Assembly: GCA_973895155.1 (NCBI GenBank)
Contig: OZ316899.1
Coordinates: 15,527,974-15,591,973 of the forward strand
Source: Marsupella aquatica
Taxonomy: Eukaryota; Plantae; Marchantiophyta
Length of the DNA: 64,000 nucleotides
Direction of reading: 5' to 3'
Shown here: piece after piece, positions 11,131 to 58,887 of the stretch
Layout of the letters: every line of letters begins with the position of its first letter
Position numbering within the stretch: the stretch's first letter is position 1
Position numbers and translations under genes: made by a program
Notes under the pieces: generated by a model
The model's input: the letters and a program-made list of their open reading frames with translations, nothing else
Told to the model about the DNA's origin: nothing
Database searches by the model: none

Positions 11131-14100
11131 TGTGGTGCGTCCCATGGCTCCCTAAACCCAAGAAACCCCCCAGCTCATGCCGATTCCCGCGGGTTTCGCG
11201 CTTGGCGAGGCCGTTTCCGCGGCTTAGCGGCATGGGACGCTGCTAACCTTCTACTACTACTATTAACATTTTACACACATATACTTGACAGATCCTTCAT
11301 CGGGTCATGAGATACGTAGCCGGCCTAATCTAGGCCTTCCCCTGTCTTCCCTTCCGTCTTGTTAGGTATGTTTGGATTCCGCCGCCGGAATGATCCCCAA
11401 TAGGCTTGGTTAAGCCGCTAAGACCTCTCTCAGCTCGACACATCCAACTCTCACTCCCCTGCTTACTTTCCTTCCTTCTGGTTGATGTGGGCACTCTTCA
11501 CACAAGTTAATGCGACACACAAATAGCAAAATGACTCATTCTGACTGAGTCATACCATGCACTTGCCATACAAACAGTACATCTCATACACAAGCTCTGC
11601 GAACTAAGCCGTGAGGCCAACTCTATTCAACTCTTAGGCATGAGGAAACATGAATATACACAAGGGTCACTGTATGACTAACCGAGAGCTTCTCGTACTA
11701 CTTGATCCCAGCCCGGCTGGTGCAAACTAAAAACTTGCTAAAGAAGAGGCCCTGAGCTCCCCGCTACCCAGGTACTTATCCTGGTAGTGGATCCACCATT
11801 CTTTGCATCGTAAGCCTAATCTACTTAACAGTAATCTACTTGACCGAATCTACCTATGTACAGCAAGGCAGGAGCACAAGTGTTGCTCCTACCAGTGGGA
11901 CCGCAATCCCACTAAGCTAAGTGTCAGGGCCGCTCCTGGTCCTGATCCTAATCCTAAACTTGGAGATCCGCGCCCGCCCTACCCACTCACGCCTCCTCCC
12001 TCCACGTCCGCCCTCCCTAAAAGGAACGGCGCCCTTGCACCGTCACGACACCGGTGGTGGATCCTTAATGGACGCCCCCAACGCTTCCTCCTCAGCCACT
12101 GCCATAGGCTCATTCCCTGACAGATTACCTGCCCTTGACTGAGTCAACTCTCCATCGGCCTGACTGGGTCCACCATCGGCGTCGGCATCGGCTCGGGAAT
12201 CGGTTACGGCCTCAGCCTCGGCTACGGTCTCCCCGGTCTGCTCAAGAGGCGGATCTGGAATACCGGCCTCGTTACTGAGTAGTTCGGCTTGGGCCGCACC
12301 ACCCCCACCTGTGATGATAGCGGGATCTATTGCTGTATTCATGCCGGAGGATGGTGCTGGTTCTACCTCTTTGGTCACCACGGCTTGTGGAGTCGGATTA
12401 CTCCTTGACCCTGAAGGTTTCCGCTTTTTCTTCTTTTCTGGTTCGGCCGCTGGTCCCTTCCCCTTCCCACTTACTTCCGGCACTGGTGCAGTTGGCGCGG
12501 CTTTTTCTTCGGCCATTACCACTCCTGGTAACTTGGTTGCCCCAATTGGAGTTGGGCCTGATGAAGACAAGCACTTAAATACTGCGGCTTGTTTCTTCAG
12601 CCGCTCCGTTTGGTTGTCGGCCCGCCGCTGGAGGTTCTCCATCTTCCTCGTGATTTCCTCCAACTCCTCCTGGGTCTCATCCAGGTCCTTGCGCGCCTCC
12701 TCTAGTTCCTTCTGGGCTTCCTCCCGTTCTTGTTTCAAGGTAGTCCTCTCCTCCCGGGTTGCTCTTAGCTCCTTGTCGAGCTCTACAATGATGACAGACT
12801 CCATCTGGTTCATCTTGGCGTAAGTCTGTTCGAGCATCTCGTCCTTCTCCCTTAGGTCGGCCTTGAAGCTGGCCGTCAGGGACGCAAGCTCCTGCTGCAA
12901 CGCCATAATCCCTTGATAGGATTTCCCTAACTCAGCCTCCTTCTGCTCAAGGGCTCCGCGGATTTTCTTGAGCTCCCCCTTCAACGCCCATTCCTTTCTT
13001 TGGGTCTCCGCCATGGCCCGGCTGTTGGCTGTTATGTGGGCCTCCTCTGTATTCTTCAGCTCTTGCTTCCACTTCTCCCTCTCTTTGATTGTGTCGGCCA
13101 ACTCTCCCTGCGTCTGAGTCAGTTTATCCTTGATATTCTGATTATCAGCCTGCGCGGTGTCCAACTGCCCCTGCATGATGTTCAGCTCATGTCGTTTAAT
13201 CCGCAGTTCATCTTGGGCTTTCTTGGTCGCCCTTAGATCTTCAATCTCGGCTTCCATCCTCCTAAGCCGCCGAATGACCTCGTCCTTCTTGCTTCTCTCT
13301 AAAGCCACCGCTTCTTCTAATTGGTGCTTCTCCAACTGCTCCCTATGGAAAAAGGGTCCTACCTCCAACTCCTCTCCAAAGATGCCGAGCGCAAGTTCCC
13401 CACACATCTCACCATACTCCATGGCTCTATTCTTAGCGTAGGTGGAGTAAGTAGAAGTGATCGGCATCGCCCATCGCGGCCTCTGCTCCCAAGCCGACCT
13501 GAGGATCTCTTCAATCGTGGCTAGAGGTTTGCTTCCTTTTTCGGCTAGCCGCCTGATGTCCTCCGGCCAATCTCCTCCTGGTAAATCCTTTTCCCTAGCC
13601 AGGGCTGCCTCCTCTTCCTGCCTGATTCGCTCCTGAAATTCCTGCACCGTCTGTTTTATGCCGTCGAAGCTCGGGGGAGCAACATCTGGTGGGGGAGACT
13701 CAGGGCTACTCTACTGGTTGGGGTCCCCTCGCACTACCCTTGGAAGTGTGGGGACAAACCGGCCACAGGTCCTTACTCCTGGAACGTGATGGTCCGACCC
13801 ATAGCCGGAATTATCATGGCTGCAGTCCTCCACTGCCTCCTCTACCTCTTGGACGTCCGGCTTCTCCCTCTCCTCTTCGTCGGTAGGAGCTTCAGGCAAT
13901 TCTGCCTCCGGCAATTACCTTGGGAGTAAGATAGAAATCCTTCCCATATATCCTCGTGCAATTGGTCTCGAGTTCCCATGACCCCACGAATTCTAATAGG
14001 TCTGACTCCGGTACCTCCGGCTTCAGCCATGGTAATCTTACAAAGGCCTCTAAGCCGGATCCGGCCATGAAGCCTTGGTACTTCTTGGTCTGCATGGCCG

Positions 14101-15062: not shown

Positions 15063-17838
15063 GGACAGGACCTAGCACCTGAGCTTGAGAAGAAGACCAG
15101 TGAATTACTAATTGAATTTCAGGATGTGTTCGCATGGAGTCACCAAGATCTGAAGGGAGTAGACCCAAAATTAGGAGAACACCGAATTGATCTAATGTTG
15201 GGGGCCAAATCGTTTCGACAACCAATTCAAAGGATGAACCCTAAGTATTCCCTGATGGTCAAAACTGAAATCGACAAACTAGTGGAAGCCGGATTCATCA
15301 CTCCAGTCCTACATTCCGACTGGGTGTCTCCAATTGTAATAGTTCCCAAGAAAGCTGGACCCGATGGTAAGCCAAAGATCCGGGTTTGTCAGGATTACAG
15401 GAAGTTGAATGAGGCTATGTTAAAAGACCATTTTCCTTTACCCTTTATTGATATGGTACTAGACATGGTAGCCAGTCATGAACTATACTCATTCATGGAT
15501 GGATACTCTGGTTATAACCAAATCAGGATTAGGCAGGAGGATCAAATCAAGACGGCCTTCATCACAGAATGGGGGATCTATGTCTTCAATCGTATGCCAT
15601 TTGGACTCTGTAACGCACCAGCGATGTTCCAACGATTAATGGTGAACATTTTCCATGACTACTTGAGAAAGTTCATGGAAATCTTCATTGATGACTTTGC
15701 AGTCTTTGGGAAGGCATCAAAGCATGCTAAATACCTCAGGAAAACCTTCATGAGATGCAGAGAGGTAGGTCTCAAGTTACACCCAGATAAATGTTTCTTT
15801 GGAGTAATAGAGGGTGTGCTACTAGGTCACAAGGTATTAAAGAAGGGCATTGAGATTGATAAGGGTAAACTAGCAGTGTGGCTAGATATCATGCAACCTA
15901 AGAACATAAAGGATGTGAGATCCTTCTTGGGATGCATTGGTTATTATCGCCGGTTCATCAAGGATTTTGCCAAGCTAGCTTTACCATTAACCAACATGCT
16001 CAAGGCAGGTGTAGACTTTGAACCCACACCAGAACGAGTAATAGCAGTGGTGGAATTGAAGCAGATGTTAGTGGAGGCCCCAATCATGATAGCACCAGAC
16101 TGGAACAAGGATTTTCATGTCTTTGTAGATGTCTCAGGCTTCTATATCGGCTCAGTACTAAGTCAATTGGATGAGAAAGGGAGGGACCATCCCATATACT
16201 TTGCCAGCCGCCAGCTTGCCGATGCCGAACGAAACTACTCCACCACAGAAAGAGAAGCATTAGGAGTCATTTGTTCCTGTAAAAAGTTTAGACATTATTT
16301 ACTAGGGTACAAAGTAATCTTTCATACCGATCATGAAAGTTTGAAGTACCTAGTAAATAAGCCAGACCTTACAGGCAGGGTAGCAAGATGGATTTTGCTA
16401 TTACAAGAGTTTGACTACGAGCTAAAAATCAAGTCGGGAAAGCTACATGCCAATGCCGACTTCTTTTCAAGGATCACAAGAGAACCTGCCACGGATTGCA
16501 TCGATGATCGATTCCCGGACGAGGAGCTCTTCATTGTGGAAATAGCTGATACATGGTACCCTGAAATTTAACAATTTCTCAGCACATCCAAATTACAGCC
16601 AGGGCTAAGCAGAGAGCAAGCCGCAGTCTTTTTGCAAAAGGTCAGACAATATTAGTGCATTAAGGGCGTACTACACAGGTATGAAATGAGCGGCACGATC
16701 CAAAGGTGTTTGGAGAAAGGAGAAGTAAAATGAGTCTTAAGGGCTATGCATGGGGAGGAGGCCGGAGGACATTTTGCTCCAGTAACCACGTCTAAAAAGA
16801 TATTAAATGCCGGTTACTGGTGGCCCACCTTGCACAAGGATGTCTATCAGTTTATCAAACAATGCGATCCTTGTCAGCGAGCGGGAGGACCAAGGGCGTC
16901 CACAAGACATCCACTGCACCCTATTCTACCTCTGGCACCATTTGAGAAATGGGGTATTGACTACATTGGACCTCTGAAACCATTGACCCATCCTCGGAGA
17001 AACAAATACATAATCCTGGCCACGGATTATGCAACTAATGGGTAGAGGCCAGGCCGACAATGAAGGATGATGCAATTACTACGGCTCAATTCATGTATGA
17101 GCAGATCTTCACCAGGTATGGCGCACCCCTAGAATTAGTTAGTGATAGAGGAACCCATTTTCTCAATGATATAATTAGTCGTTTAAATGAGTAGTATTTA
17201 GTTAGACATAGACCTACTACTCCCTACCACCCAAAGGCAAATGGGTTGACAGAACAAGCAAATGGAATTATAGGAAACATATTAAACAAGACCGTAGCTC
17301 AGAACAAACTCGATTGGGATGATAAATTGTTTGCTGTTGTTTTTGCTTACAATTTAGCCTATAAATCCACTACCGGTCATACACCCCTTTTTTTAACCTT
17401 TGGACAAGAAGCCCTGGTACCCATGCAACTTGAGATTCCTACATTTCAAGTTACAATTGAGGAGAGAGCCTCAGAGGAGGAAAGCCTAAAGGAGCGAGAA
17501 TATAGATTAGAAGCTTTAGAAGAGGCAAGAATGATTTCAGCTGAGAGAGTAGAATATAGACAGAATACCATGAAGCAACAGTATGATAAAAAATTGAAAC
17601 CAGTTAGTATTCACACAGGAGATCTTGTATTACTTTATGACAGTAGGTATAGTAGGTTTCCAGGGAAGCTTTACACTTGCTGGCTAGGACCTTTCAGGGT
17701 ATCAATGAAGTTCTCCAATGGCTCTGTGCAATTGGCCAACATTACTGGAGAGATATACCCAGTTTGCATCCATTATGACCGCCTCAAGAAATACTATATG
17801 GACGAAGATGAAGTTGTTTGCAAGGACGCTTCACAATT

Positions 17839-17851
17839 AAGTGGGGAGCTA
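17839..17851 (+). promoter_or_regulatory. Polypurine tract of family-1 gypsy
   Basis: AAGTGGGGAGCTA lies at the end of integrase, directly before the LTR start TGTGATGC. Confidence 0.8.
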
Positions 17852-19614
17852 TGTGATGCCTAACCAGGAATCACTAGGCCGGTTAAGTGGGAAAACGGAA
17901 GTGTACCCTAGAAATACCTTAGTATAGTTACAAGAATGAGGAAAATATAAACAATTAAGGATGACTATGGAACCCGGGCCGAGGCCGGAAGTAAGGACGT
18001 CGGGGGAGAGAATAAAATTAGGGTTAGGGTGCACTAAGTGTCGGCAGCTAGGGGTAACCAACGATAGGGAAGACCAGAGGAGGAGAGGGGTAAGGACAGC
18101 TCGCGAGGAATGGTGGCTCATTTGCAAGCACAAATTGGGCAGACGACTACGGGAGGTCAACTACTGCCAGCTGCTTAGACAAGCACTCTAGGCGGGAGCA
18201 GATACCAACAAACGACTCAAGGAGGGTATGAGCAACGTCAATCAAGCGACACATTTTTGGGGATGCCTGTTCAAACGGGAAACTGAGTACATTGGGACTT
18301 ACAAGGACGAAGAATCAGAGAGAGCAGCTTGAGAATGGCAGGAGCTCGCTCGACTGTGGGAGCTGCAGAAATCTGTCTTCTTAGGAGGAGAATTCATCAA
18401 GGCCAAGTTCTTGTGGACTCCTACTGCCAATCAGCTTGACGACCTTCTGTTTTGCAAAAACAAGATCGTCGGCATTCGGGACGCCATCAACCGTTGCAAC
18501 GACATACACTGGGAGTTGAAGGGTAGCACAGAGGGGTGGACAAAGGCAACCGTGCTAGGAGAAACATCCACAACAACCGAGATGAAGAGGAAAGGAAACA
18601 ACAACGAAGAGGCCACCCCAGCAAAAAGAACGAGGTCGGCGGCACCAAGGAAGCCAGCAGAGCAGGGAAGCAGGAGGCAGGCGGAAGCCGAAGAGGAGGA
18701 GGTCGATCCCATCAATGCCATTCCAACAAAGGATGACACCTGGAAAGGCTGGGCGGCGACCCTACCAGAAGAAGTGCAACTGCATTTTGCACGGGAGGAG
18801 GATGCATGCTTTACGGCCATGCAGACCAAGAAGTACCAGGGCTTCATGGCCGGATCCGGCTTGGAAGCCTTCGTAAAATTACCATGGCTGAAGCCGGAGG
18901 TGCCGGATTCAGACTTATTAGAATTCGTGGGATCATGGGAGCCCGAGACCAATTCCACAAGGGTGTATGGGAAGGATTTCTATCTCACTCCCCGGGTGAT
19001 TGCCGAAGTGTTTGGCTTGCCGATGGGCAATAAGACCAAAGTAGATACCAGGAAGACCTTGCCAGACAAAGAGTTTCGGTCGTTTCCAGGGCCATCAACA
19101 AAGAATGGCTTCTTTCGAAACACCTGCACCAACCCACACATAGGAGAAATGATTGATTTCTTGCGGGTGACCATGCATTGTAACTTGCCAAGGGCAAAGA
19201 TCGGCAAGGCACAGGTCTATCTGGCGGAGAGGCCAGACCCAAGCCGAGACTACAATGGGTACCTCCTCACCCAACTAAAGAAGATCTTGAAGGAGGAATA
19301 GCTGGTGATCGGCATGGGAAGCATGTCCCGGCTTGGCTATCACATGCCGTTGTTGTGCCGGTATGCCAGAAGTCAGATCTTTGCCCCAGTACTTCCCCTG
19401 CAGGCGAGGGCACCAGAGGAAGTCCCGGAGCAGAGGCCGGAACCAGAGGAGCCCAACCAGCCCGCCAGTCCTACGATCGAGCAGATGTTTCAGCCAAGAA
19501 AAGAAGACTTGCCGATGCAGCAATCAGGCATGCAGAATCTGCTGAAATTGCTGGAAAAGGAGAAATCAGCCTATTCATTAAAAGTGTATTTTCTTTTGTT
19601 CACAAATCAGTCCT

Positions 19615-19700
19615 GAAATGTACACTTTTATGTCCCCAAATGTACACTTTACGAAGCCCAAATGTACACTTTTTGATACCTAAATGTACACTTTATAGGC
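19615..19700 (+). repeat. Left subterminal repeats AAATGTACACTTT (about 4 copies)
   Basis: Directly visible; same motif at the right end. Confidence 0.85.
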
Positions 19701-19960
19701 CAAATCTTATTAGTATTATATTATATTATTATATTATATTATATTAATTATAATAGTATTATATTACTTATTAGTTCACAAAGAACCATGGGATAGAGAT
19801 CATACTTGTAAAAACATTTCCGCACAAAGAAGCCCAGGCAAGGACCATTGATTGATAATGTGTGAAAATAATTATTTACAATTGTGTCCAAACTTACAAT
19901 GAATATCCAGCGCTGGCACCATTTTTACTATCTAATGGGCTTAATACATGAGTCAGATCT

Positions 19961-21094
19961 CTAAACAAAGTGCTCCTTACAATATTTATTTGAGCACGTG
20001 CCTTTGTCTCCTTTACTATCTACCCTAATGTCACGGTTGCAACTCCCTTTATCTTCAGGGAGATGAAATTTGGTGGTGTTGTTCCTAACTGCTATAATCT
20101 CCCGCAAAAAGTGTCTGGGATTTTCTCTATACAGACCTGAATATTCTCGTCCTACAAATGATCTAGCAAGTGAGGTGACAAGTGCATCGTCAAGTTCCAC
20201 CTCAGGACGTAAGCTACATATACGGTGCTTCACAGCCCAAGGAATCTCATTGCTATTGAGGTCCAGCACACTATGCCTATACTGTGACTTCCAAATTTTT
20301 GCTGCACATCTCTTACTAAGTTGATTATAAGTAATCTCATTTTTTGCCTTGTCTCTCTTAATGTGCAATAGAGACCACTTTGGAGAGTTTAGGAGAAGAT
20401 AACAACGAATGTCACTTGCATGTGACAATTTCTCAAGACATGGCCAAAGAATTGTTAGAAGAAAATTGTCTCCACGATTGGCATGGGTGTAGGACACTGG
20501 AAATAGTCCGGTCATGTCTGGGTTGGCAAATGCCTTCAAGGGGGAGTCATCCACAAGGAGTGTGTTGGTTTCATCATATAGATTTCCAAATGCACTCCAT
20601 ACCACCCGAAAATCCTTCAATAGCACATTTGCCTTTCCATTTGTAATGTCACGCCTTTGAATGCTTGTGTCAAAGGCTTCCACCCGTGTGAATACAAACT
20701 TCAGTTTCAACCGCTCCTCAATTGTGAACATCATGTTCAACATTTTCACTGTTCGTGGCATCCCAGCACATGTCCAAATTGCAACGTCAAACCTGTCAAA
20801 AACCAACTTTAGAAACTCATGGAGCCCTGGCCTCTCTGTATACATGCGACTAGTTCCATTTGATCTATCCCAATGCACTCCACTTGAGGTGACAATATTC
20901 CTGGATGTGCCCTTGCTTTGGAATTCAATAGAATCCCAAAGTATTTTATTAAGGTCCAAAATCAGCAACTTCCGCTTGAGGGGACCAGGTCTCAATTCTG
21001 CAAGTGCACCAAACACCATTCTCAGAGAAAAGACCAAAAGTGAACTTTGGATTAGGATTGTCTCAGTCCAAAAATACAAGACAATGGCTGACAA
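19961..21094 (-). CDS. FCP1/SCP (NIF) HAD-family CTD-phosphatase-like protein; probable ATG at 21019
   Basis: KRKLLILDLNKIL, RPGLHEFL...FDVAIWTCA, LLKDFRVVW, NTLLVDDSPLKAFANP. Resembles the DLNGxL subfamily. ORF is uninterrupted. Confidence 0.88.
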   Translation of the reverse strand: MSAIVLYFWTETILIQSSLLVFSLRMVFGALAELRPGPLKRKLLILDLNKILWDSIEFQSKGTSRNIVTSSGVHWDRSNGTSRMYTERPGLHEFLKLVFDRFDVAIWTCAGMPRTVKMLNMMFTIEERLKLKFVFTRVEAFDTSIQRRDITNGKANVLLKDFRVVWSAFGNLYDETNTLLVDDSPLKAFANPDMTGLFPVSYTHANRGDNFLLTILWPCLEKLSHASDIRCYLLLNSPKWSLLHIKRDKAKNEITYNQLSKRCAAKIWKSQYRHSVLDLNSNEIPWAVKHRICSLRPEVELDDALVTSLARSFVGREYSGLYRENPRHFLREIIAVRNNTTKFHLPEDKGSCNRDIRVDSKGDKGTCSNKYCKEHFV

Positions 21095-23684
21095 AAAAGA
21101 AAATTAACCTACATACCGTTTTTAGAAGCCTCACAATGTGTAGACGGATATGGAGACTTTAATTGGTGAGCGCATTCTGTGAGACCGAGAAGTATTTTAG
21201 ATTGATATGAATAAATACAAAGTCAAAGGCTGAATTTCATTCCGAAATAAGAGATCCGTATTCATCAATAATCATGTCAGCACCAAGCTCCTGTTGGATT
21301 TCAAAATTGACATCTGAAGTACTTTGTTCTACCCAATAAGGTGAAGTCCAAACAGGAGTTATCAACCCCAATTCTCCACTCTTATACTCCTCCTTATTGA
21401 GAATTGAAGGAGCAGCATCCAATGATATTTCTTGGCCTCGATTTGGCCCACTTTTCCACACATAAAATCGTGCGTTGCATTCCAATGACCTCCATCCAGT
21501 TGATCCAACTCTATTTCCTTTCTTTTTTGAGAGCGGAAGGACAATAGGACTCCCCGAGTGTGAACGAACGAACACCAATTTGTCATCAGAAGCTGAAAAG
21601 AGTGTGTCGGGACAAATTGAAGCACCTGCCTGGTTGTCAACAGCCGTTGATGCATTTCCTCCTAGATTGATCGGAATGTCAGGCAATCCGCCAGTCTCCC
21701 CCTCGGTCTCCCCCCGAGTCAATTCTTTAGTTTAAGCTTCATTTGAATCTCCGAGCCTCGTTGCGCCTTCATTGATCAGATTGGTTGAAGAAAGATGATC
21801 AAACGTATCAACCCTTGCTCCTTCCAGTTGCTCCATCTGTCCTCCCAACGTTGTTGGATTGGGATCATCCTTGTCCAAGTTATCATCAACTTGAACTTCA
21901 TTGGGCCCCGGAGGGATGTCATCTAAACCAGATGAACGGTTTGGTGCAAGTCCAATATCATCATCTACATCGTAAGGCTCACCTTGACCAACACGGTCAT
22001 CCAAATTCTTGACATATGCCTTCTCTGATGCCTCTACGCCTTCAGCCACTTTGTCAGCAACATCTTCAGACTCAGAACCATCGGATTCAACAGCGATAGC
22101 TACAGCCGCAACAGTGGTAGCCCACTGTCGAGAATTTTCAGCAAGTGATTCACAATGAGCTTTAAGTGAGGGAACTCTCTCGCAAAGGTAGGAAGCAAAA
22201 GCTTCCACAAAATGCCTCTCAGAGTGAGAGTCACAATAAACAAAGCATTCCCTATCGCAAAAAAATGATGTCTTCATGACTTGGCCACCGGAGAAAAAAT
22301 CTAGAACCAAATCTCCCGGTTCTGACAAGGATTCAATAATCCTTCGGATCATCCGCGTGGGTTTGGCATGAGGATTAACCCACCCTCCGCGACTGCCAAC
22401 TGTCTCAAATCGAGGGGCCATATTCATAATCTTGACGGCCTCTTCCGGGTCCAAAACCACTTTTAGGTCGTCGTTTTGTGTCCCCTCATCTGATTCCTTA
22501 GCCTTCCCCTTTCCCTTGTCGATCTTGCATACTTCGTAATCAACATCCTTTGCAGTATACAAGAATTTTGGCTTTGGATAGTTGGGCTTGAAAACTTCAT
22601 TCCAATTGACGTCTTCATCTCGAGAAATCCCCGCAAAGATAACTTCTTCAATCCCCCCACCCCAACATGAGTCATGAGGGTGCGGTTGATCATCTCGAGA
22701 ATAACTCCCATACTCAATGTGAATGGTCAAAGCTTTCTCTTGTCCCAGTTTATGAAGGGCACCATGGACATTCAATGCAAGTTGTCTAGGATGAACTGTT
22801 ATCGTCACAACAATCATGGGATTTTGTGGAAGCTCCACAATGTATTCAAAGAGAACAAGAATCTCTGCTTCAGTCCATTGTTTTTGCGGAAGCCGGCTAA
22901 AATCAACAATGGCAAGAGGGCAGGTCGGAGGAGCTTCTTGCAATGACTCTGGATCAATGGTCTTCATGAGATTGTCGCTAAAAAATGTAGCCCATGGTAG
23001 GGTCCAAGAACGTGATCCTCCGCCAAATTTCTGGCAGTATATATCATCTAGGCGGAATGCCAATGCTGTCGGCAAGATTGCGCTCTCCCGCGTATGATTT
23101 GGTTTTAAAAGGTTGGCAAGATAGACCTTGCCAGCGGCTCTTCGACACCTGCTGAACTCTGAATCAATTGCTAGCGTAGGAAGAACCTCCACTACTTTCC
23201 CCCAATTAGTATTTGCCGGGAAATTCACCGCATCCTTGGTGCAATAGTAGTCTTCAATAAGGGACTTCAGTTTCCGCACGATCTTCACATCTTTGGCCAA
23301 CTCCTATATAGATGGCATGTCTGATTTATTAGAGGCATCTTTCTTTAGCAATACCTTTCCTGACTTCACCCGCGTCAGTATTCTTGTGATGTCTCGTTGT
23401 GAGATCAACTCACCATCAAAACAACGAAACATGGCAACAGTAATTGCTTTTTCAGAATTCTCATTTCCTTCTACCCCAACTCCATCGGGAAGTTTCCCAT
23501 CCAACCACAACTGGCATACCAAACTCCATAACTCAAAAAGAGCATCGTCCGCAAACAGTAACCAGTAAACATTTCGACAATCTTTCCTTCCCATGGTCAT
23601 TCTTGCAAGAGCCAACCAATCCTACAATTGCAAAGGAAAGTCTGTTAGTTCTCCATAACTCAATTGTTTGACAGCACTCAGGTG

Positions 23685-24080
23685 CGGACTGAGACCATCA
23701 CAGTCCAACACAGAACTAGACAGTATCAGTGGAAATATTCTATTGAATGTGCATGATTTAGTTTGGACTGGGACCATCCCAGTCCAGAACAAAACTAGAC
23801 AGTATCAGTGGAAAAATAATCTATTGAATGTGTATGAATCCATTTGGACTGGGACCATCCCAGTCCAAAACAAAACTAGACAGTATCAGTGGAAAAATAA
23901 TCTATTGAATGTGCATGAATCCATTTGGACTGGGACCATCCCAGTCCAACACAAAACTAGACGATATCAGTGGACAAAGATTCTACTGAATGTGCATGAA
24001 TCCATTTGGACTGGGACCATCCCAGTCCAACGCAAAACTAGGCGATATCAGTGGAAATATTCTACTGAATGTGCATGAAT
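23685..24080 (+). repeat. ~80-bp tandem repeat (5 copies), each with the palindrome TTTGGACTGGGA-CCA-TCCCAGTCCAAA, inside a predicted intron
   Basis: Directly visible; lies between donor 24118 and acceptor 23622. Confidence 0.9.
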
Positions 24081-44700: not shown

Positions 44701-47700
44701 TTCACCATCACATTCGGACATCCACCCCAAAGATAGTCCTTCATTGAACTCACCGAGTTCACACTCCAAAGGAACTCATTATCCACCGGCCAATTCCCCT
44801 TTTGAAACACCTTTGGATCCATCAAGTTGATCTCCGAGCCAGTATCAATGAGCGCCCGCACCTTGCCTTCCATTCCTTCCAACTGGCACTCGCTCTTTGG
44901 ACTTGCTCGAGCCCAGTATCCATCTCGGTAAGCATAACCATTTCCTTTCATTGAGCCCATGACATGAATGGTCCTCAACTGCGCGGTAATGCTTTCTCGT
45001 TCTTCCCCTTTAGTCGGGTCCCTGTTTGCCATAGACTCAGCTTCGCTTCCAGTTCCCATGAGCTCCTCTTCCGCATCGAAGAACTCATCTCATCCAATTG
45101 CCCCAAGGACTCCCCAGTATGGTCGCCAATGTTGCGAGGACTTAAAGTTAGGGGCTCCTCAGGCAAACTGCGCATTTCTGGCTGCGATTGGGACAGGCGA
45201 CAAGCACTTTTCGGAGTGAACTCTCACTCCTTTATATTTTTACTTTTCTCACAAAGGTTACAATAGGTGCCCTCGAGTAAGCTTGCCCGCAAGAGTCTAG
45301 TAGCTGGCCCTACGGTGGGCCGCTACCTCTAACTTGTTGGGTAGAACTCCTCGAGTGACTAACTACTCAAAATCTGATGGAAAAACTATCCTCCTTAGCT
45401 CACAAAAACTCAACTAGCTACTCCACTAGTCTAAACAGCTCGCATGGAACTCGGGCCTGGACCAACAAGGCTCCAAACTCAAGAAATCCTCTCCTGGATC
45501 GACAAGACTCCAAACTCGAGAAATCCCCGCCTGGATCAACGAGACTCTAGACTCAAGAAATTCCCCGCCTGGATCGAAAACTCCCCACCTGGATCAAAAA
45601 CTCACTTGGAACTCCAAAACCGCCACACAATAGTCGAGTTCCACAGAATGGAGCGAAACTCAGAGAACGCAACTCAACAAATCTCAATAGACAACCGCCA
45701 ACCTCAATGAGCCGAGGCTCAAGTCTTAAGTAGCATCGGAAACCCAACCATCCAGCCTGAGCCAGCTACCATCAGCGAGGCTCATCCAAACTCCAAGCCT
45801 GGTGACTCACCCAAACACCAAACCTGGCGACGACGAGTCACCCAATCACCAAACCTCAATCCATCCAACCAAGCAGTCCCTCCGAGTCAGCATGCATGCA
45901 ACCCAACCGGGAGGCCTCGCCCATCATCCCCTATAAAAGCCATTTCTGAGCCAAAATCTTTTGGCACGACACCGTGGCCAAAGAAGTACCGGAAGAGGCA
46001 GTGATCGCAACCTTAGACGCGATCAACCAGGCCGGGCCTGGTACAGAAGTTGGGGTGGTGGAGGCCTTTCCCAAGCCCGAGGGTCCAGAAGACCCACCAG
46101 TGGCTATTCCAGAGGACAATCCGATGGTGGAGGAGGACACTCCAGCCCCTTCCAACACTACATCCCCAGGGCTGGATGTCACTACCCTGGATCCCACGTG
46201 AGTTAATGTCTGACCGTGCCCAACTCTAGACGGGCATAACCTGGACCACCCGGAACTCTTCGTACCGGGTACATTTCTAAATGGGCTTTTGGGAGATTTC
46301 TCCCAACATATAGCCCGGGATATCGGGGAGTTTGTGGCTCGGAAGGTAGCCTACTTCTTCAATCAGGAGTTGGTTACCACAGTAAAGGCAGGTCGGGCTC
46401 AGTTGAAGGCCCTTCAGCGGATAGAGCGGTACCGGGTTGAGTCCGTGTACCTAAAGGATGAAGTTGCGGCTCAAGAGACTGAGCTTCTGCAACTATGACC
46501 CAAGGTTGCAGCCGCCAATGAATTGTTAGCAAATGCGCATGCCCTTATCGCCTTAGCCAAACAGGCCAAAGTCAAGAAGGAGGCCAAGATTGCACGGCTC
46601 CGGACCCAGGTTGACAGTTTGAAGAATCAAACTGTCATCTGGCAGAAAGACCTAGAGGAGGCCAAAGAGCGGGCCTAGCGTGACACTACGGAGATTGCCA
46701 CCCTGCAGGCCGAAGTGGCACGGCTTCAAGCCAAAGCCGAGAAACAGACCCAGGTGGTGGACAAGTTGACGAGCAACGCCCAGCAACTGGAAGAGGCATG
46801 CAAGGAGGCAGTTGAGGAGACAGACGCGGCAAAGCGAGAAAACAAATCTCTGTTGGACCAAGTCCAACTCCTCAAGGCGGACAACGACAGACTCCGTAGG
46901 CAGCGGGATGGCCGCTCCCACTTGGACGGCTCTGGCAAGCGCACCAGACATTAGCGGAGGGTTAGGCTTAGAATAGACTTAGGAGTAGCTAAAACAGGCT
47001 GGTAGGACAAGTGTCGGCCAGAAGATAGCGGCGCTGACACATTAGCCAGCCTGTGTAGAGTAGGTTAGACTAATAGGACAAGCAGGCACCAGCTTAGCAA
47101 GGATATAAGTTAGCATAGATTTGGGCACGAGGCCAGGCCAGTCCTCAGCCCTTAGTATTTAGCGGCCCCCCAGTTGAGGTTAGGGGAGGGGGATTTTAGA
47201 CTCAGAGGTTGGCCATTTGCAGTACGCGCGGGGAGTCCCAAACTCGGTGAAATACCGGAGTGCCAAGGGGAGGGTATACGACTAAGCTCGCTGGGCGAGT
47301 GCGGAGCCGGGCTCTGTTGTAGTGTATACTCCTCGGCCTTGGGCCCGTTCGTTCACGAGGTGTCGGGTCAACCAATCATAAAGTGTATGATCATAAATGA
47401 ATGAAATCCTTTCTCCTTAATTCCTTCGTGTAAATCGAGATTTCTGTTATGTATGAATGCATGTATGAGTCTTATGTGCAAGTATCAACGCCGGGCCAAA
47501 CATGTTGTGCCAACCGTGCACGGGGTGCCGGATACAGGTACGGGGTTGCGAGCCCGGGTTGAGCCCTTGTACTAATGGATCCGGATTGAAGGCGGTAACA
47601 CGAAGGCTTAGAAGTCTGTGAGCCGGGGTCGACCCCGTGTCGACTAAGGTATGTTCCGACGGCGGAACACAAACTATACCTAGGAGGTGTCTGTACATAA

Positions 47701-47840
47701 CAGTAAGCGCACTTAGCGCTACTTTACGTACTAAGTTAGGAGCATTCTGTGCGTCCCTCCCTGCCCAAACCCTCATATTTACGAAGGATGTGCCTGTCTA
47801 AGCCAAAGCCCGGGTTAAGGCCTAGGCTGACGATGTGACA

Positions 47841-50800
47841 GGAAGACAAACACAGCAACTGGCACGTTATTGCGTAAGGACCATCATCGTGTCAATGGGA
47901 TCACAATGCTCAAATCCGAATGGCCAAAGGTTCTGGCTGAGGCGTATGGGGATGACAGGTTAGATAAGGAATGGCAAAGTAATGGGGGTAGCCAAGGCAA
48001 GGTAAGGCACATTTTGTTGGGGTTGGATACCGCGCATAATGTCCAATTATGGCGATACAAGCAGAGGCGCGTGTACATCCCAGAGTCTCTAAGGTTAGAG
48101 GTTTTGCAGAAGTACCACAACTTGCCCTGGGGAGGGCATGGCGGACAAGCTGCTACGTATCGCAGCATGTCACATGATGTGTATTGGCCAGACATGAAGC
48201 AATCGGTCCTTCGCCACGTGCAAAGTTGTTACTCGTGCCAAAAGAACCAAATGGTCTATAGGGCAAAAGGAGGATTTCTTCAACCCTTACTAGTAGCTGT
48301 GGCTCCATGGACTTCATTGTTGGGTTACCTAAGTCTCACGGCAGTAACTCCATCTTAACAATTGTGGATCGTTTTTCCAAGATGGCGTATTTCTTGCCAA
48401 CTACGAAAATGGTTTCGACCCGAGAGGTTGCCGGTCTAGTGTTTGAGAATGTATTCCGACAATGGGGATTGACGTTGCATATCCTGTCCAACCGTGATAC
48501 CAAGTTCACGGGCCATTTTTGGAAGGCGTTGTTTTGGTTATCCGGAAAGGACCTTACTAGGGGATCAGCGTATCATCATGAGACAGATGGCCAAATAGAA
48601 CGGTGTCGCGAGGACTTAAAGTTAGGGGCTCCTCAGGCAAATTACGCGTTTTTGGCTGCAATCAGGACAGGTGACAAGCACTTTTTGGAGCGAACTCTCA
48701 CTCCTTTATATTTTTTACTTTTCTCACAAAGGTTACAATAGGTGCCCTCGAGTAAGCTTGCCCGCAAGAGTCTGGTAACTGGCTCTACGGCGGGCCGCTA
48801 CCTCTAACTTGTCGGGTAGAACTCCTCGAGTGACTAGCTACTCAAAATCTGACGGAAAAACTATCCTCCTTAGCTCACAAAACCAAAAACTTGACTAGTT
48901 ACTCCACTAGTCTAAAATAGCTCGCACAAAACTCGGGCCTGGACCAAACGAGGCTCCAAACTCAAGAAATCCCCGCCTGGATCAACGAGACTCCAGACTC
49001 GAGAAATTCCCCGCCTGGATCGAAAACTCCCCACCTGGATCAAAAACTCACTTGGAACTCCAAAACCGTCGCACAACAATCGAGTTCCGCAGAACGGAGC
49101 GGAACTCATAGAACGCAACTCAATAGATCTCAATAGACAACCGCCAACCTCAATGAGCCGAGGGTCAAGTCTTAAGTAGCATTGGAAACCCAACCATCCA
49201 GCCTGAGCTAGCTGCCAGCAGCGAGGGTCATCCAAACTCCAAGCCTGGTGACTCACCCAAACACCAAATCTGGTGACGACGAGTCACCCAATCGCCAAAC
49301 CTCAATCCATCCAACCAAGCAGCCCCTCTGAGTCAGCCTACACACAACCCAACCGGGAGACCTCGCCCATCATCCCCTATAAAAGCCATTCCTGAGCCAA
49401 AATCTTTCGGCACGACATCCTCCCCCAGTAAACCTGAGCAGCCTCCGGTCTGCTCCAATCCATCAGATTTCCTCTAAGTCTGAGTCCAAACTCGAGCCAT
49501 GCGCCTGGACCATTTCCTCCTCAAGAAACTCAAACCCAAAGCCTTCAGACTCGGCCTTAGGCACTCCACTTTCCAGAAACTTGAAGTCCAACTCATCTGA
49601 ATCAGAACCAGTCAAGCCACTTTTGAAACTCAAGTCCAACGGATGCGCCTGGACCAGTGCCTCATCTTCAAATTCACTCAAGTCAGAACTTGAGTCCATT
49701 CCCTTCTTGGTCCTCCTCTTGAAGATCTTCACCCTTTTCCCTGCGTAAGGTACTTGGTGAACTGTTCCATCCAACTCCCGAATAGTATAGGTCGCATTCG
49801 CATGAACAGCAACCACCACATACGGACCTTGCCACCTCCGAGCAAACTTGTTTCGGCTCAAGTGTTGTTCGTCCAACTTACTTTTGTAAACCAGAACCCA
49901 ATCCCCTTCCTTAACCAAGACAGGCCTCAACCGATGAGTCCTGTCGAACCTGCCCTTGTTCCTTAACCTCGCCATCTTCAATTGCTTCCGAGCCACCTCA
50001 ATCTTTGCGGGTAACAAGTTGAAGTGTTCGATCCTTTGAGCCAGCAACTCCTCTCTCAAAACTTCATCTTTCCATCCAATCAGTCGCCAGCTGCAAACAT
50101 CTTTCTCGAGTGGCATCATCGGCAAGTGCCCAGTAAGTAGCTCAGCCGGAACGTATCCGGTCACTGAGCTACAAGTCATCTGATCCGCTAACAGAGCAAG
50201 TGGAAGGAGACTTGACCACCTGCCCAAGTCCCCATCACAAGCCTTAACCAAAGCGCCCACAATCTGGATGTGCCCCCTTTCAGATTTCCCATTGCCTTAA
50301 GTAGCAATCGGAAACCCAACCATCCAGCCTGAGCCAGTTGCCAGCAACGAGGCTCATCCAAACTCCAAGCCTGGTGACTCACCCAAACACCAAACCTAGT
50401 GATGACGAGTCACCCAATCGCCAAACCTCAATCCATCCAACCAAGCAGCCCCTCTGAGTCTGCATGCACGCAACCCAACCGGGAGGCCTCGCCCATCATC
50501 CCCTATAAAAGCCATTCCTGAGCCGAAATCTTTTGGCACAACAACGGGTGAATGGTATTGTGGAGGACTACTTGCGTCACTTTGTGATGGCCAATCAAAA
50601 GGATTGGGCAAATCACTTAACAATGGCCGAGTTTAGGTATAACTTGACCAAGCATTTGGCAACAGGGTTTGCATCGTTTGTGTTGGCCACTGCGAGGACG
50701 CCAAGGGCACCCTCCTGGCTCATAAATACGGAAGCTTGGCGGACGGAAAGCAAGGTTCCTTCCATGGACAATTTTATTCGAGAGCGGCGCCTAGTTGTGG

Positions 50801-54300: not shown

Positions 54301-56136
54301 AGCAGGTTGGCAATGAGTTTGTACATGATGGTTAACATGGTCAACGGCCTCCAATCTCTAAGTCTTCTCTTGTCAGTTTTTTTGGGAATGAATCGAATTA
54401 CCCCATCCTTGATTCCGGAAGCAAGATGACCAGTCCTCCAGAAATCACAGACCATGGCATAGAGGTCCGCTTTCATAAACTCCCAGCAAGAGCGTAGAAC
54501 TTCAACAATCATCCCATCTATACCAGGTGCCTTGTCATAGGGTAGAATCAAAAGGATCTCATGCAGCTCCTTCAATGATGGTAGTGCCTCTAATCTTCTA
54601 TTTTCAGTCGCAAAAGGGGAAAAATGTGTATGCTCTGAAAGTCTACGGCAAGCAGCCCGCATCTCAGTCAACTCTTGAAAGGTCTTCACAGTGAGGGAGT
54701 AAAGTGACTCACAGTACCTTTGAACTTCTCGTATTACCAATTTCTCCTCCCGGATCTCAACTCCATCCTCGGTGATAAGAAACTCCATATTCTCACGAGA
54801 GCGCTTGGTTTTCACCATTGCAAAGTAGAACTTGGATGGTTCATCTCCATGCCCCAGCCAATTGATTCTAGACAGTCTTCGATAGTGGTGAGCATCCTTC
54901 AACTCCACCTCACGAACACAAGCATCAGAAGAGTAAAATTCCAAAAGGGTGTCTGGTGAATAGTCTTCCATAATTGTCACTTTTAGAGTGCGCAACTTAT
55001 TCCTCAATCTTTCCATTTCTGCCTCCCTTGGAATCGGAGTAGATTGTAGGTCCATGTAGCATCTTCTAAATCTCTGATAGGCAGTGGCAAATCTTAGGTG
55101 GGGGTCAAGAGGGGGATCGAAATCCCCCAACCAAGCAGCAGCCAACAAATCCAAATTACCCGTGTCCCTGAGCACCATAGGATTGGCCTTAAAGTAGGTA
55201 GCTCTTTTGCAACCCGATGCAGCTGGGCGGATGGGTGTGAGTCGAAAAGAAATGAGAATAGGATCATGGTCCAAGAGGGCAGATGATCCGTCATGCTTAA
55301 GCTCAAGAATTTCTTCAATCCATAGCCCCTTCTCACTAATGTAGGAGCGGTCAAGTCGGGATTGAAAGAGCCTACCATTGCAAATCCCGCGCCAGGTAAA
55401 AAGAGATCTCGACACCGAACCCAAAATGTCTCTGACATCTAGCAGATCAAAAAGGATTTGTAAGAAGCGCCAGAATTCCAATTCCCAGCCCCGGAGAAGA
55501 AGGGACGGGCCCGTAGAGTCAGAGCGGCTCTCAGTCATGTTGAAATCTCCACCAATGATCCATCAATTGTGGGGCAGCACGTTGAGAAGTCGTTCCATAG
55601 CAAGATCCGATCACTAGTGGAGTTGGGTGCGTACAGGCTGAGAAAGCCAAAATTGCCCTCCGAATGCTCTAGTTGTACCCACACAGCACGACCTCCCCCA
55701 ACAGTGCCATTGGAAGTTACTTTGAAAGCCGGGTTGATCAAAATGGCAGCACCTCCGCGGCCCTCCTCAGGGCCAGAGTGTGACGCCGCCGGTACGGCGG
55801 TTAATGAGTGATTCAGTCTAACTGCGCTCGGCACGAGCGTTAGGTGGGTCTTAGGCCGCTATTATTAGCATAACGACAGTATTTAGGTAATCATTAGGGG
55901 TAGGACATCATTAGGCAATAAGGGGGACTTCAGGTTCGGGCTGGCGGCGGGTCGCTATTCGCACACCCGGGTTACGAGCGTGGAGGGGCCCCTCCCTCGG
56001 GTCCGTATAACGAACTTAAGGAAGCGGCCACTGACGCACGCTGACTCAGACCGGTGGAGTGGCCGGTACACCACAAGCGTGAGCGGTTCAACCTATGGGC
56101 GGCGAGGAGACGTCGGGGATCGACAAGCCCTCAAAG

Positions 56137-56143
56137 TATAAAA
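56137..56143 (+). promoter_or_regulatory. Candidate TATA box of the family-2 LTR
   Basis: GTATAAAAGGGG followed by a pyrimidine-rich leader, ~105 bp upstream of ATG 56245. Confidence 0.55.
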
Positions 56144-56244
56144 GGGGAGCCAACCCTTTGTAGTGCACCAGTCCATCAGTCCGCGCGCCAGCTTCGACCC
56201 CAGCTCTCTCGTTCTCTCTAGGTCGCCACTACTATCTCCTCTGA

Positions 56245-58887
56245 ATGTCGCACACGATCCTCTCCAGCTCGGCCATTCGATTCTGGACGCAGTTCCTATC
56301 TACCGGAAGGCACTTGGCCGATTCATTGAAACACGCCAACCCGCGCCGATACGAGATCGAACGCGAATACGAGAGAGCCATCCGCCTAGCAGGACGACAC
56401 CACTACGTCCTTAACTTTGACTACCCGTCTCAGAGCGAGCTTTACCGACCAGCTGAGGTATCTGGGTACTTCTTCAATGGAGACAAATATATCGGGTTCT
56501 GGGAAGCATTGCTTCGGCTTCCGGACGAGGTCTTCAATATCCCGGGTACAATCGACCTGCAGCGACATCACTTCGACCACATCCCTGCCCAGGTTCGGGC
56601 TGTCATTAACGGCGAGTCCAGCACCAACCGTTCGACAAGGGCGTCCGCACTCGCTTCGGAGAACTTCTACCAGCACCTACAGAGCTTCATGGGAACTCGG
56701 CCATCAACCAACATGACCAACTCAGCCGGACCCGTACCCGTACCCGTACCCGTGCCCATGCAACCTCAGCTTCAGCTTCAGCCTCAGCCGCAGCCTAGCC
56801 AAACCCCACCACCTATCACCCAGCCAGCACAGGTACGCTCCGTCATCAACGCTGTGGATCTTAGCGATGACGACGAGGCTACCCCACCCTTGACCAGGCG
56901 GCCCAGAGGAACAAGCGCTCGGGGGGCCGACACTATATCGTCCCCACCCCCTGCTCTGACCCCAGGAGCGGCCCCAGCAGACAACATGGTGACCGTGGCC
57001 GCCCCGGGCCCGTTACCAACCGCAGTGGCACTCCCCAGGCCCGATCGGGAGGATGGGGAAGTATCACCTTCCCCGAGTCAGTCACGGGGAAAGAAGAGGA
57101 AGGAATCCGCCAGTGCATCCGGGTTACCGTTGGCCACGGTAGCCGTAGCCAAGGTAACGATGCATCGCATGGGGGAAAACGTTCACAGCAACATCCTCCA
57201 TCCCAAGCATGCGGTGTACCTGAAGACTCAGGGATTTGAGCACCTCGCCTCTCTCCCCTGGAACACTTGCAGGTACTACGGGGAGGACATGACAGAATTC
57301 GTCAAGAATTATGACGACGTACGTCAACAGACTCGGCTGCGGGGAAGGAATATGTCCCTCACAGAAGAACGGCTCAAGATGATCTTCGGGTTACCCGAAG
57401 GTGACCATCGAGTCGAATCACGGGCTCCCAGGGGCAAGGGGGCCAAGTACCAATCTTCAAGTTTTCCCTCAGAGGGATCAGTAGACAACGGGTTCGTGAT
57501 GAGGACCTGCCTCATGCCCGAGATAGCTGAGCGGCTGGAGTTCCAGAGGTACGCTCTCCACATGATGGAACCCCGGGGGGAGATCTCCGCCGCCCAGGTC
57601 ATCCAGGTCGAGAACTATCGACCTAGGAAATGGGCGTCGTACTTCGCTAAGAAATTCCATGAAGAGATGGAGCGGCGAAGGAAGATGCTGTACATTGGCG
57701 GGAAGGCGTATTTCGCTAGCCACATCGAAATCATTCTTGAGTGGTACGCCCGGTTTGATCGACGAACCCTTCCCCGCATCAACGTTACAAAGCTGGTCCC
57801 AGCTAGGTGGGTTTTTCCGGCATTGGAGAGACGGCCCCAACCCGAGGCCCGAAGTCCAGTGGACACGCCAGCTTCACCCACCCCACCTCCACAAATAGCT
57901 GTAATCGTAACCGAGGAGGCACCGGAGGGGTCGGTCGTTGCAACCGTTGATGCGACCCAACTAGCCGGGCTAAGTACAGAAGTTGGTACGGCAGAGGTCT
58001 TACCCGAACCCGGGTCTCCCAAGGACCCGCCGGTGGCAATCCCGGAGAACCGGACATCGCTGCAGGAGGATACTCCGGCCCTTTCCAACGTTATGTCCCC
58101 AGGGCTGGACGTCACTGCCCCGGCCCCTGCGCGTGTTGATGTCTGCCCGTGCCCAAATCCGGACAGGCACAACTTGGACCACCCGGAACTCTTCGTACAG
58201 GGTACGTTTCTGAACGGGCTTCTGGGAGATTTCTCTCATCAAATTGCCCGGGATACCGGGGAGTTCATGGCCCGGAAGGTAGCCTGTTTCTTCAATCAGG
58301 AGTTGGTTGCCGCCGTAAAGGCAGGGCGGGCCCAGTCGGAGGCCCTTCAGAGGATAGAGCGGTACCGGGTGGAGTCCGTGTACCTAAAGAACGAAGTGGC
58401 GGCTCAAGAGGCTGAGCTTCTGCAACTACGACCCAAGGTTGCAGCCGCCGATGAGTTGTTAGCAAAGGCGTACGCTCTTACCGCCCTAGCCGAACAGGCC
58501 AAAGCTAGGAACGAGGCCGAGATTACACGACTCCGGAACCAGATTGACAGTTTGAAGAAACAAGCTGTCACCTGGCAGAAAGACCTGGAGGAGGCCGAGG
58601 AGCGAGCCCAGCGGGACGCGACGGAGATAGCCACGCTGCAGGCCGAGATGGCGCGGCTCCAAACCGAGGCCGAGAAGCAGGACCAGCTGGCGAGTAAACT
58701 GACGAGCGACGCCCAGCAGCTGGAGGAGGCATGTCAGGAGGCAGCAGAGGAGACGGACGCGGCGAGGCGAGAGAACGAATCTCTGCTGGACCAGGTCCAG
58801 CTCCTCAAAGCGGACAATGACAGGCTTCGAAGGCAGCGGGATGGCCGTTCCCATTCGGGCGGCTCTGGCAAGCGTGCCAGGCATTAG
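56245..58887 (+). CDS. 880-aa LTR-encoded protein (plant-transposon-protein-like domain, P/Q-rich linkers, C-terminal coiled coil, basic tail)
   Basis: Uninterrupted ORF. GFEHLASLPW...MTEFVKNY...RLRGRNMSLTEERLKMIFGLPEG aligns by eye with family-1 GLEAFVKLPW...LLEFVGSW...RVYGKDFYLTPRVIAEVFGLPMG. Confidence 0.85.
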   Translation: MSHTILSSSAIRFWTQFLSTGRHLADSLKHANPRRYEIEREYERAIRLAGRHHYVLNFDYPSQSELYRPAEVSGYFFNGDKYIGFWEALLRLPDEVFNIPGTIDLQRHHFDHIPAQVRAVINGESSTNRSTRASALASENFYQHLQSFMGTRPSTNMTNSAGPVPVPVPVPMQPQLQLQPQPQPSQTPPPITQPAQVRSVINAVDLSDDDEATPPLTRRPRGTSARGADTISSPPPALTPGAAPADNMVTVAAPGPLPTAVALPRPDREDGEVSPSPSQSRGKKRKESASASGLPLATVAVAKVTMHRMGENVHSNILHPKHAVYLKTQGFEHLASLPWNTCRYYGEDMTEFVKNYDDVRQQTRLRGRNMSLTEERLKMIFGLPEGDHRVESRAPRGKGAKYQSSSFPSEGSVDNGFVMRTCLMPEIAERLEFQRYALHMMEPRGEISAAQVIQVENYRPRKWASYFAKKFHEEMERRRKMLYIGGKAYFASHIEIILEWYARFDRRTLPRINVTKLVPARWVFPALERRPQPEARSPVDTPASPTPPPQIAVIVTEEAPEGSVVATVDATQLAGLSTEVGTAEVLPEPGSPKDPPVAIPENRTSLQEDTPALSNVMSPGLDVTAPAPARVDVCPCPNPDRHNLDHPELFVQGTFLNGLLGDFSHQIARDTGEFMARKVACFFNQELVAAVKAGRAQSEALQRIERYRVESVYLKNEVAAQEAELLQLRPKVAAADELLAKAYALTALAEQAKARNEAEITRLRNQIDSLKKQAVTWQKDLEEAEERAQRDATEIATLQAEMARLQTEAEKQDQLASKLTSDAQQLEEACQEAAEETDAARRENESLLDQVQLLKADNDRLRRQRDGRSHSGGSGKRARH

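Follow-up and report, generated by a model that had tools for sequence, protein, structure and literature searches.

Liverwort Ty3/gypsy retrotransposons with a candidate trans-acting accessory gene inside their long terminal repeats

Results

Two unalignable families of long terminal repeats encode one kind of protein

In a 64,000-nucleotide stretch of the Marsupella aquatica genome (contig OZ316899.1, positions 15,527,974 to 15,591,973; hereafter the window), two families of long terminal repeats (LTRs) carry a long open reading frame (ORF) for the same type of accessory protein. Both families belong to a liverwort-type Ty3/gypsy lineage, with LTRs of 3.9-5.1 kb and a plain internal region of gag, protease, reverse transcriptase (RT), RNase H and integrase. 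The anatomy of an accessory ORF lying wholly within the LTR borders is very probably correct. We lean towards the reading that the LTRs of the two families carry a complete accessory gene whose product, through a VANC-like core, acts in trans on the family's own LTRs.

The ORF is intact in family 2 only, in the copy that we call copy 1 (Table 1). This copy begins TGTGAC and ends GTGACA with CAGAG on both flanks, and thus has TG...CA termini together with a 5-bp duplication. It interrupts a minus-strand long interspersed nuclear element (LINE), which Pfam scans identified from RVT_1 and zf-RVT on the left and DUF4283 on the right; virtual excision of the copy with one CAGAG gave a reading frame that is open across the LINE junction. 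Because of its defined ends, the CAGAG on both sides and the frame restored across the junction, copy 1 is a solo LTR. Copy 2, which is 77% identical to copy 1 by self-BLASTN, consists of two pieces held apart by a nested minus-strand gypsy element (37063-45974).

Family 1 is represented by two broken copies in opposite orientation that are ~85% identical (self-BLASTN). In copy A the deletion at 13871/13906 takes out the second half of the core domain. Copy B, which starts TGTGATGCC at 17852, is disrupted by in-frame stops and by an insertion of ~13 kb; beyond an in-frame stop, the last helix of the core and the linker resume in 19302-19616. The family 1 "protein" is a composite of both copies, and its ORF pieces were each searched separately and never joined.

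Copy B is a 3′ LTR, because a polypurine tract and 2.8 kb of RT-RNase H-integrase sequence directly precede it. The tract, AAGTGGGGAG followed by CTA, also stands 5′ of the 3′ LTRs of two elements from the liverwort Calypogeia that are described below (L002 and L006). The pol fragment is colinear with L002 at 66% DNA identity, and at the protein level the family 1 RT reaches 68% identity with proteins of Calypogeia. Copy A abuts this fragment head-to-head. Since RT homology begins abruptly at 15063, at about RT residue 104, the junction between copy A and pol is a truncation and not a designed inverted repeat. A simple solo LTR or a 5′ LTR was rejected as an identity for copy A: its edges showed no target-site duplication and no primer-binding site (PBS), and 1-11189 contains neither gag nor pol. 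Copies A and B cease to be homologous ~850 bp past the ORF, and their flanks differ; the 3′ end of the family 1 LTR can be placed only approximately.

Table 1. Coordinates of the LTR families, the encoded protein and related loci. Positions refer to the window, except for the Riccia sorocarpa loci, which are numbered within each locus.
Feature	Position	Strand	Remarks
Family 2 copy 1, solo LTR, 4011 bp	55779-59789	+	starts TGTGACGCC, ends GTGACA; within a minus-strand LINE
Target-site duplication CAGAG, 5 bp	55774-55778; 59790-59794		left and right copy, either side of family 2 copy 1
TATA box TATAAAAGG	56137-56145	+	100 bp 5′ of the ATG; sole TATA[AT]A[AT] match in this LTR
Intact LTR-borne ORF, 880 aa	56245-58887	+	family 2 copy 1
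N-terminal domain, ~130 aa	56245-56640	+	hhalign match to N-terminal ORFs of Calypogeia LTRs
Basic patch GKKRKE, resembling a nuclear localization signal	57088-57105	+	within a disordered linker of 19% Pro
Core globular domain, residues 311-530	57175-57834	+	Transposase_32-like sequence, VANC21-like fold
C-terminal coiled coil	58405-58836	+	sub-threshold Pfam matches: GAS, 757-864; ATG16, 721-856
Second basic tail GKRARH	58867-58884	+	family 2 ORF
Family 2 copy 2, LTR 3′ 1.85 kb	45988-47840	+	residues 555-880 and non-coding tail; ends ...GTGACA
Family 2 copy 2, 87-bp piece	36980-37066	+	equivalent to 57817-57903
Family 1 LTR copy A	11189-15062	-	starts TGTGATGCC at 15062; internal deletion 13871/13906
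Family 1 copy A ORF piece	13892-14947	-	N-terminal domain (likely start MSNVNQ at 14686), basic patch, first third of core
Family 1 copy A ORF piece	12043-13647	-	linker, coiled coil, tail
pol, 5′-truncated	15063-17851	+	RT from ~residue 104, RNase H, integrase; Pfam, and tblastn with L006 pol
Polypurine tract AAGTGGGGAG	17839-17848	+	same sequence in Calypogeia elements
Family 1 LTR copy B, left part	17852-19600	+	3′ LTR of a plus-strand element; right boundary approximate
Family 1 copy B ORF piece	18411-19298	+	full first part of core
Family 1 LTR copy B, right part	32600-35592	+	linker, coiled coil 33206-34729, conserved 3′ non-coding 850 bp; left boundary approximate
Riccia sorocarpa core + DDE_Tnp_4 loci	L007 ~9800-14000; L009 9246-16700

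The encoded protein is conserved under purifying selection

The two families share no detectable DNA similarity (no BLASTN match at E ≤ 1e-5). In protein sequence their cores nevertheless align: across 137 residues, 32% are identical between positions 321-456 of family 2 and the copy B piece 18411-19298 (BLASTP E = 1e-18; tblastn 2e-17). The N-terminal regions are just 20% identical to each other, while a joint profile of both matched the N-terminal ORFs of Calypogeia LTRs (hhalign 91.9%, E = 7e-7); the family 2 N-terminal domain also matched the Calypogeia element L005 (tblastn E = 1e-4). Basic patches and linkers of 17-19% Pro occur in both families, and the C-terminal parts match coiled-coil Pfam families only. 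The protein consists of an N-terminal domain, a disordered basic and Pro-rich region, a core of ~200 aa, a Pro-rich linker, a long coiled coil and a basic tail. Between copies, Ka/Ks (the ratio of nonsynonymous to synonymous substitution rates) was 0.29 and 0.34 in family 1 and 0.27 in family 2, and with values of ~0.3 the ORF was therefore under purifying selection while the lineages diverged. A preliminary description of the window had proposed two LTR families dissimilar in DNA that share a protein core defined by a motif string, an N-terminal domain, a basic patch, a Pro-rich linker and a coiled coil, as a conserved architecture; the motif string was reproduced, and each of these elements was found again.

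Complete Calypogeia elements carry the ORF in both LTRs

Direct repeats around gag, protease, RT, RNase H and integrase were found in L006, an element of Calypogeia fissa obtained from the DNA surrounding a Calypogeia pol gene, and around no single element of the window. L006 is complete. Its 5′ LTR (2029-6801) and 3′ LTR (13051-18173) are 98% identical, with termini TGTGAGGCC...GGTTAACA (TGTGAG...TTAACA) and the target duplication CCATT on both sides. The 6.2 kb between the LTRs encodes gag, a zinc knuckle (zf-CCHC), protease, RT-RNase H and integrase (rve), with no extra ORF in the internal region; gag begins 157 bp past the 5′ LTR, and the integrase ORF extends into the 3′ LTR. An ORF with the core domain is present in both LTRs (the 5′ LTR measures 4.8 kb), which bears out the earlier proposal that the gene is housed wholly within true LTRs. 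In L006 a stop separates the core from the coiled-coil part at 4568-4570 and 15591-15593. This stop is common to both LTRs, and the element therefore transposed with the ORF already broken. Many other Calypogeia copies of the ORF are broken too.

The same layout was found in L002 and L004, whose LTRs measure 4.9-5.1 kb, while two other loci (L001 and L003) showed no paired LTRs within 10-kb flanks. In family 2 copy 1, L002, L004 and L006 the ORF lies within the LTR borders and not 5′ of gag or 3′ of pol in the internal region, the positions that define an internal accessory ORF (aORF). At least five LTR families from two organisms, without remaining DNA alignment to one another, have the ORF at the same place. 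A moss-like contig (L008) shows the same order, with a related ORF 5′ of gag-pol; as both of its ends are cut off, LTR borders are not visible.

The sequence immediately after the 5′ LTR is not conserved among L002, L004, L005 and L006, and complementarity for self-priming of the Tf1 type was not found in the Calypogeia elements. A conserved TGGCGCTAGATGGAGGGG block that resembles a PBS, while not being adjacent to the LTR, lies 45-55 nt 3′ of the LTR end in four diverged Calypogeia elements. The block TTCTTTTTGGCGCTAGATGGAGGGGG is conserved at this distance past the 5′ LTR end at ~13656 in L002, ~13445 in L004, ~7057 in L005 and ~6855 in L006.

The core belongs to a group of plant transposon accessory domains

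An exhaustive hidden Markov model search of 1.84 billion representative proteins with the core profile found 63 relatives, where a word-indexed protein homology search with the core had no match. The named relatives are nearly all from liverworts (Calypogeia fissa and Riccia sorocarpa), the exception being an Orobanche protein. Six of 65 family members match Transposase_32 (PF20167) colinearly with the core, the best at 31.8 bits (E = 1.6e-7), which does not reach the gathering score of 45; the window cores themselves gave no Transposase_32 match. The core profile also matched a moss group that includes Physcomitrium A9U5K7 (hhalign 97.8%, E = 8e-13), and six of the seven members of this group match PF20167.

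AlphaFold models were compared with the PDB for the window family 2 core (pLDDT 89.8) and for a Calypogeia core (pLDDT 93.5). For both models the sole outlier was the VANC21-DNA complex 9lnj_A, with borderline values for the window core (E = 0.15, probability 0.60, TM 0.40) and for the Calypogeia core (E = 0.03, probability 0.92, TM 0.50); the next PDB matches had probabilities of ≤0.03. A fold search of BFVD returned noise only. The sole angiosperm match, P0060 from Orobanche minor, was found by the core profile at E = 2.5e-4 across the whole library and by DUF1985 (PF09331) at E = 8e-5, over overlapping residues. P0060 alone matches DUF1985, at 23.1 bits against a cut-off of 35.1, and no liverwort member does. 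By sequence, P0060 would link the core family to DUF1985.

The core had been described as PMD-like. At the level of families this did not stand, since PMD (PF10536) had no match to the window proteins at E ≤ 10, nor to the 65 family members at E ≤ 1. At the level of folds it was reasonable, through the Transposase_32 relationship, the VANC21 match and the reported structural homology of VANC to the PMD protein MAIN (PMC13547354). The core is a remote member of the Transposase_32/DUF1985(VANC)/PMD-fold group of plant transposon accessory domains, and its link to VANC is a lead, not membership. As this domain superfamily is already in Pfam, the term "undescribed system" used at the outset was too strong.

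Two diverged copies in Riccia sorocarpa have the core gene directly 3′ of a DDE_Tnp_4 gene of Harbinger type, and neither is accompanied by gag-pol. The core domain is thus a mobile accessory module used by several transposon classes. Only in the window's organism and in Calypogeia has it been demonstrated inside the LTR; residence in the LTR as an old lineage trait, as first suggested, goes further than this distribution. At one of the Riccia loci (L009) a NIF phosphatase gene lies downstream of the core gene, and a NIF-like ORF also occurs within the 13-kb insertion of the window.

Discussion

A known class of domain in a new position

We rate the LTR-borne gene as a known accessory-domain class that is new in its position and in its host group. 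The anti-silencing factor VANC21 of the Arabidopsis Mutator-like element (MULE) VANDAL21 (DUF1985, DUF287 and a coiled coil; PDB 9lnj/9lnk) is likewise a transposon-encoded accessory protein that is not required for catalysis and that joins a globular core to a coiled coil. It is also the sole PDB fold match of two independent core models, and a DUF1985 protein is matched by the core profile. VANC, however, is encoded by a DNA transposon, is dicot-specific and is spliced, whereas the carrier here is a bryophyte LTR retrotransposon with the gene inside the LTR; no DUF287 was found in the protein, and the DUF1985 gathering score was not reached.

The Transposase_32 or Athila-domain ORFs are accessory proteins of Ty3/gypsy elements with a coiled coil and a nuclear localization signal (PMC11728184, PMC13547354). 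Transposase_32 occurs in the 3′ aORF of sunflower Athila and is related to ATHILA ORF-1; there the aORF belongs to the internal region, following pol and preceding the 3′ LTR (PMC11728184), whereas here pol meets directly the LTR that contains the ORF. Coiled-coil oligomers have been reported for both VANC and the Athila domain (PMC13547354). The PMD proteins MAIN and MAIL1 and the PMD ORFs of gypsy elements and MULEs are, like the core, mobile plant accessory domains tied to transposon silencing, and the core is joined to the PMD fold at one remove, through the homology of VANC to MAIN (PMC13547354), with no PF10536 match for any member.

Other plant Ty3/gypsy aORFs (Ogre ORF1, the Tekay 5′ aORF, the antisense ORFs of Retand and Grande) resemble the present ORF in being family-wide, often with a nuclear localization signal and disorder (PMC7264820, PMC11728184). 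Unlike it, they are described as internal, 5′ of gag or 3′ of pol, and neither the review PMC7264820 nor the literature search mentions one inside an LTR. A gene inside the LTR, and hence at both ends of the provirus, is known from sag of mouse mammary tumour virus (MMTV), an ORF in U3, and from nef and bel/bet, which overlap the retroviral U3. Those carriers are animal retroviruses and the proteins are unrelated, immune-modulating and at most 320 aa long, while the ORFs described here span 600-900 codons and fill about two thirds of a plant-type LTR. When ORFs inside LTRs were sought in the full-text literature, MMTV sag and similar cases from retroviruses were found but none from plants, although an earlier description is possible; within the searchable full text the arrangement looks undocumented.

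A model for an LTR-borne gene

In the reading that we favour, a 3′ accessory ORF would have come to lie 3′ of the polypurine tract, after which reverse transcription would copy it to both ends of the element. A TATA promoter of its own, close to the 5′ border of the LTR, would drive the gene. A place in U3 is probable for the ORF, because conservation within the LTR is highest at the 3′ end, where R and U5 are usually found; the genomic promoter, R and U5 would then occupy the conserved last few hundred bp. In family 1 the last ~800 bp, which are 3′ non-coding, are 94-95% identical between copies, compared with 72-88% in the ORF, and this suggests that the conserved 3′ end of the LTR holds cis-acting sequence. 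Counted from the LTR end, L006 has a TATA box at -139 and the sequence AATAAA at -36 and again at -15.

On entering the nucleus, the protein would form oligomers via the coiled coil and bind DNA via the VANC-like core, and it may act in trans on the family's own LTRs so that these are kept transcribed, by anti-silencing or by trans-activation. That a solo LTR can retain the gene, another point raised at the start, is confirmed by 55779-59789 with its intact ORF, and such solo LTRs could remain donors of the protein. A VANC-like function, judged by analogy, is a tentative proposal that we hold with less confidence than the trans-acting gene as a whole.

VANC binds short motif arrays in the non-coding DNA of its own element, and the Calypogeia LTRs have arrays of TAAGCGC around the ORF. 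TAAGCGC/GCGCTTA was counted 19 times in L002 (8741-13611), 24 times in L004 (8257-13395) and 11 times in L006 (2029-6801), against a maximum of 6-7 in shuffled sequence. The copies cluster in two non-coding blocks that flank the ORF, in a manner that recalls VANC target arrays (PMC5735166, PMC10398659) and hints that they may be binding sites of the LTR-encoded protein. The most specific version of the model would make the LTR a self-contained cassette of promoter, ORF and terminator, whose product is a VANC-like anti-silencing or trans-activating factor with sequence specificity for motif arrays in the LTR that encodes it. This version is speculative, and we consider it rather unlikely in its full form.

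Several observations weigh against the favoured reading. The link to VANC consists of TM scores of 0.4-0.5 and one sub-threshold bridging protein, and a sequence search of the PDB with two profiles returned coiled-coil or noise matches only and missed VANC21. The motif arrays of Calypogeia have no counterpart in the window's own LTRs, where no array rose above shuffled sequence. Family 2 is seen in the window as LTR only, its internal region lying outside. No canonical PBS adjoins any 5′ LTR, a match to the initiator methionine tRNA having been sought and not found; in the window itself no 5′ LTR is attached to an internal region. Promoter use, the poly(A) site and the U3/R/U5 borders are predictions from sequence. 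Finally, L006 moved with a broken ORF, and the protein is therefore dispensable in cis.

Alternative explanations

The strongest competing explanation places the protein in the replication cycle, in line with proposals for Athila-domain proteins; it would be an oligomeric helper of particle assembly, of RNA export or packaging, or of nuclear import of the pre-integration complex. The closest sequence family, Transposase_32, is that of the sunflower Athila 3′ aORF (PMC11728184), the Athila domain has been modelled as coiled-coil pentamers with many host contacts (PMC13547354), and the LTR protein has both a long coiled coil and patches that resemble nuclear localization signals. However, Pfam scans detected no RNA-binding or capsid-like domain, the sole structural match is a DNA-bound anti-silencing factor, and the transposition of L006 with a broken copy means that any such role would have been supplied in trans. 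We regard a helper of this kind as a serious possibility, but clearly a less probable one than a gene that acts on its own LTRs.

The gene could also be a passenger, an accessory gene of a Harbinger- or MULE-type DNA transposon that was captured once in an ancestral LTR and brings no benefit to the retrotransposon. The Riccia copies next to DDE_Tnp_4 genes, with no gag-pol adjoining, would fit such an origin, as would the DUF1985 protein that is the sole angiosperm match and the many broken copies in Calypogeia. A passenger would not be expected to show a Ka/Ks of ~0.3 in both window families, to keep one position in at least five LTR families, unalignable as DNA, in two organisms, or to retain 880 intact codons and a TATA box in a solo LTR; a related ORF stands in the same place 5′ of gag in the moss-like L008. 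This explanation therefore appears improbable. Far less probable still is that the repeats are not LTRs at all, being instead internal accessory regions of several elements, or terminal repeats in inverted orientation as in a DIRS-like element. RT-RNase H is indeed flanked by copies A and B in inverted orientation, and an N6_N4 methylase ORF lies nearby. The methylase, though, belongs to the separate 13-kb insertion, no tyrosine recombinase was found, and copy B has a polypurine tract at its edge. A DIRS-like inverted-repeat element is refuted by the truncation of RT exactly at the copy A edge, by the location of the methylase, by the direct LTRs of L006 and by the target duplications around L006 and, as CAGAG, around family 2 copy 1.

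Significance

To our knowledge, accessory ORFs are widespread in plant LTR retrotransposons and their functions are largely unknown, and VANC, which comes from a dicot DNA transposon, is the only well-understood anti-silencing factor of a plant transposon. Placement in the LTR means that a gene is copied to both ends of the element and left in every solo LTR, a novel means by which a retroelement can carry and amplify a gene that acts in trans. Some 4-5-kb "non-coding" LTRs of bryophytes contain real genes, which are now labelled hypothetical or unnamed proteins in Calypogeia fissa and Riccia sorocarpa. If the cassette form of the model were true, it would give LTR retrotransposons their first anti-silencing system, and in bryophytes. 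Each solo LTR could then continue as a working gene that acts in trans, and the VANC/PMD/Transposase_32 module would seem to have served transposon counter-defence already early in land plants. Liverworts make the model testable, with transformation and methylome tools available in Marchantia.

Other features of the window

The insertion that interrupts family 1 copy B (~13 kb, 19600-32600) has arrays of AAATGTACACTTT-like repeats at both ends (19603-19705 and 32259-32583) and probably represents a large DNA transposon. Its minus strand encodes a NIF/CTD-phosphatase-like ORF (19961-21094) and an N6_N4 DNA-methylase-like ORF (21732-23300), its plus strand a DUF7869 ORF (30460-32007). A 27-bp unit is repeated in tandem in at least 25 copies at 27264-28211, and a related stretch occupies 25923-26128.

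An LTR of this lineage is inverted against the pol of another copy at two places, L005 12067-16707 and window 11189-15062. Such recurrent inverted junctions between LTR and pol could reflect an insertion preference for relatives, or repeated rearrangement.

An integrase (H2C2 and rve) of another plus-strand gypsy element (47870-48741) abuts the 3′ end of family 2 copy 2, and that LTR was therefore inserted inside a pol gene. The element nested on the minus strand between the two pieces of copy 2 is a full member of a second gypsy family, with 0.9-kb LTRs that contain no ORF. Further LTR copies or fragments of this family lie at 36108-36982, 48604-49417 and 50296-50547 (region 36108-50547), and 37793-38289 matches 49733-50229 at 97.6%.

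At the left of the window, 885-6710 on the minus strand contains two long ORFs of 773 and 694 aa without a Pfam match, which are adjoined by an ORF with NSD-type PHD fingers (5961-6710, minus strand).

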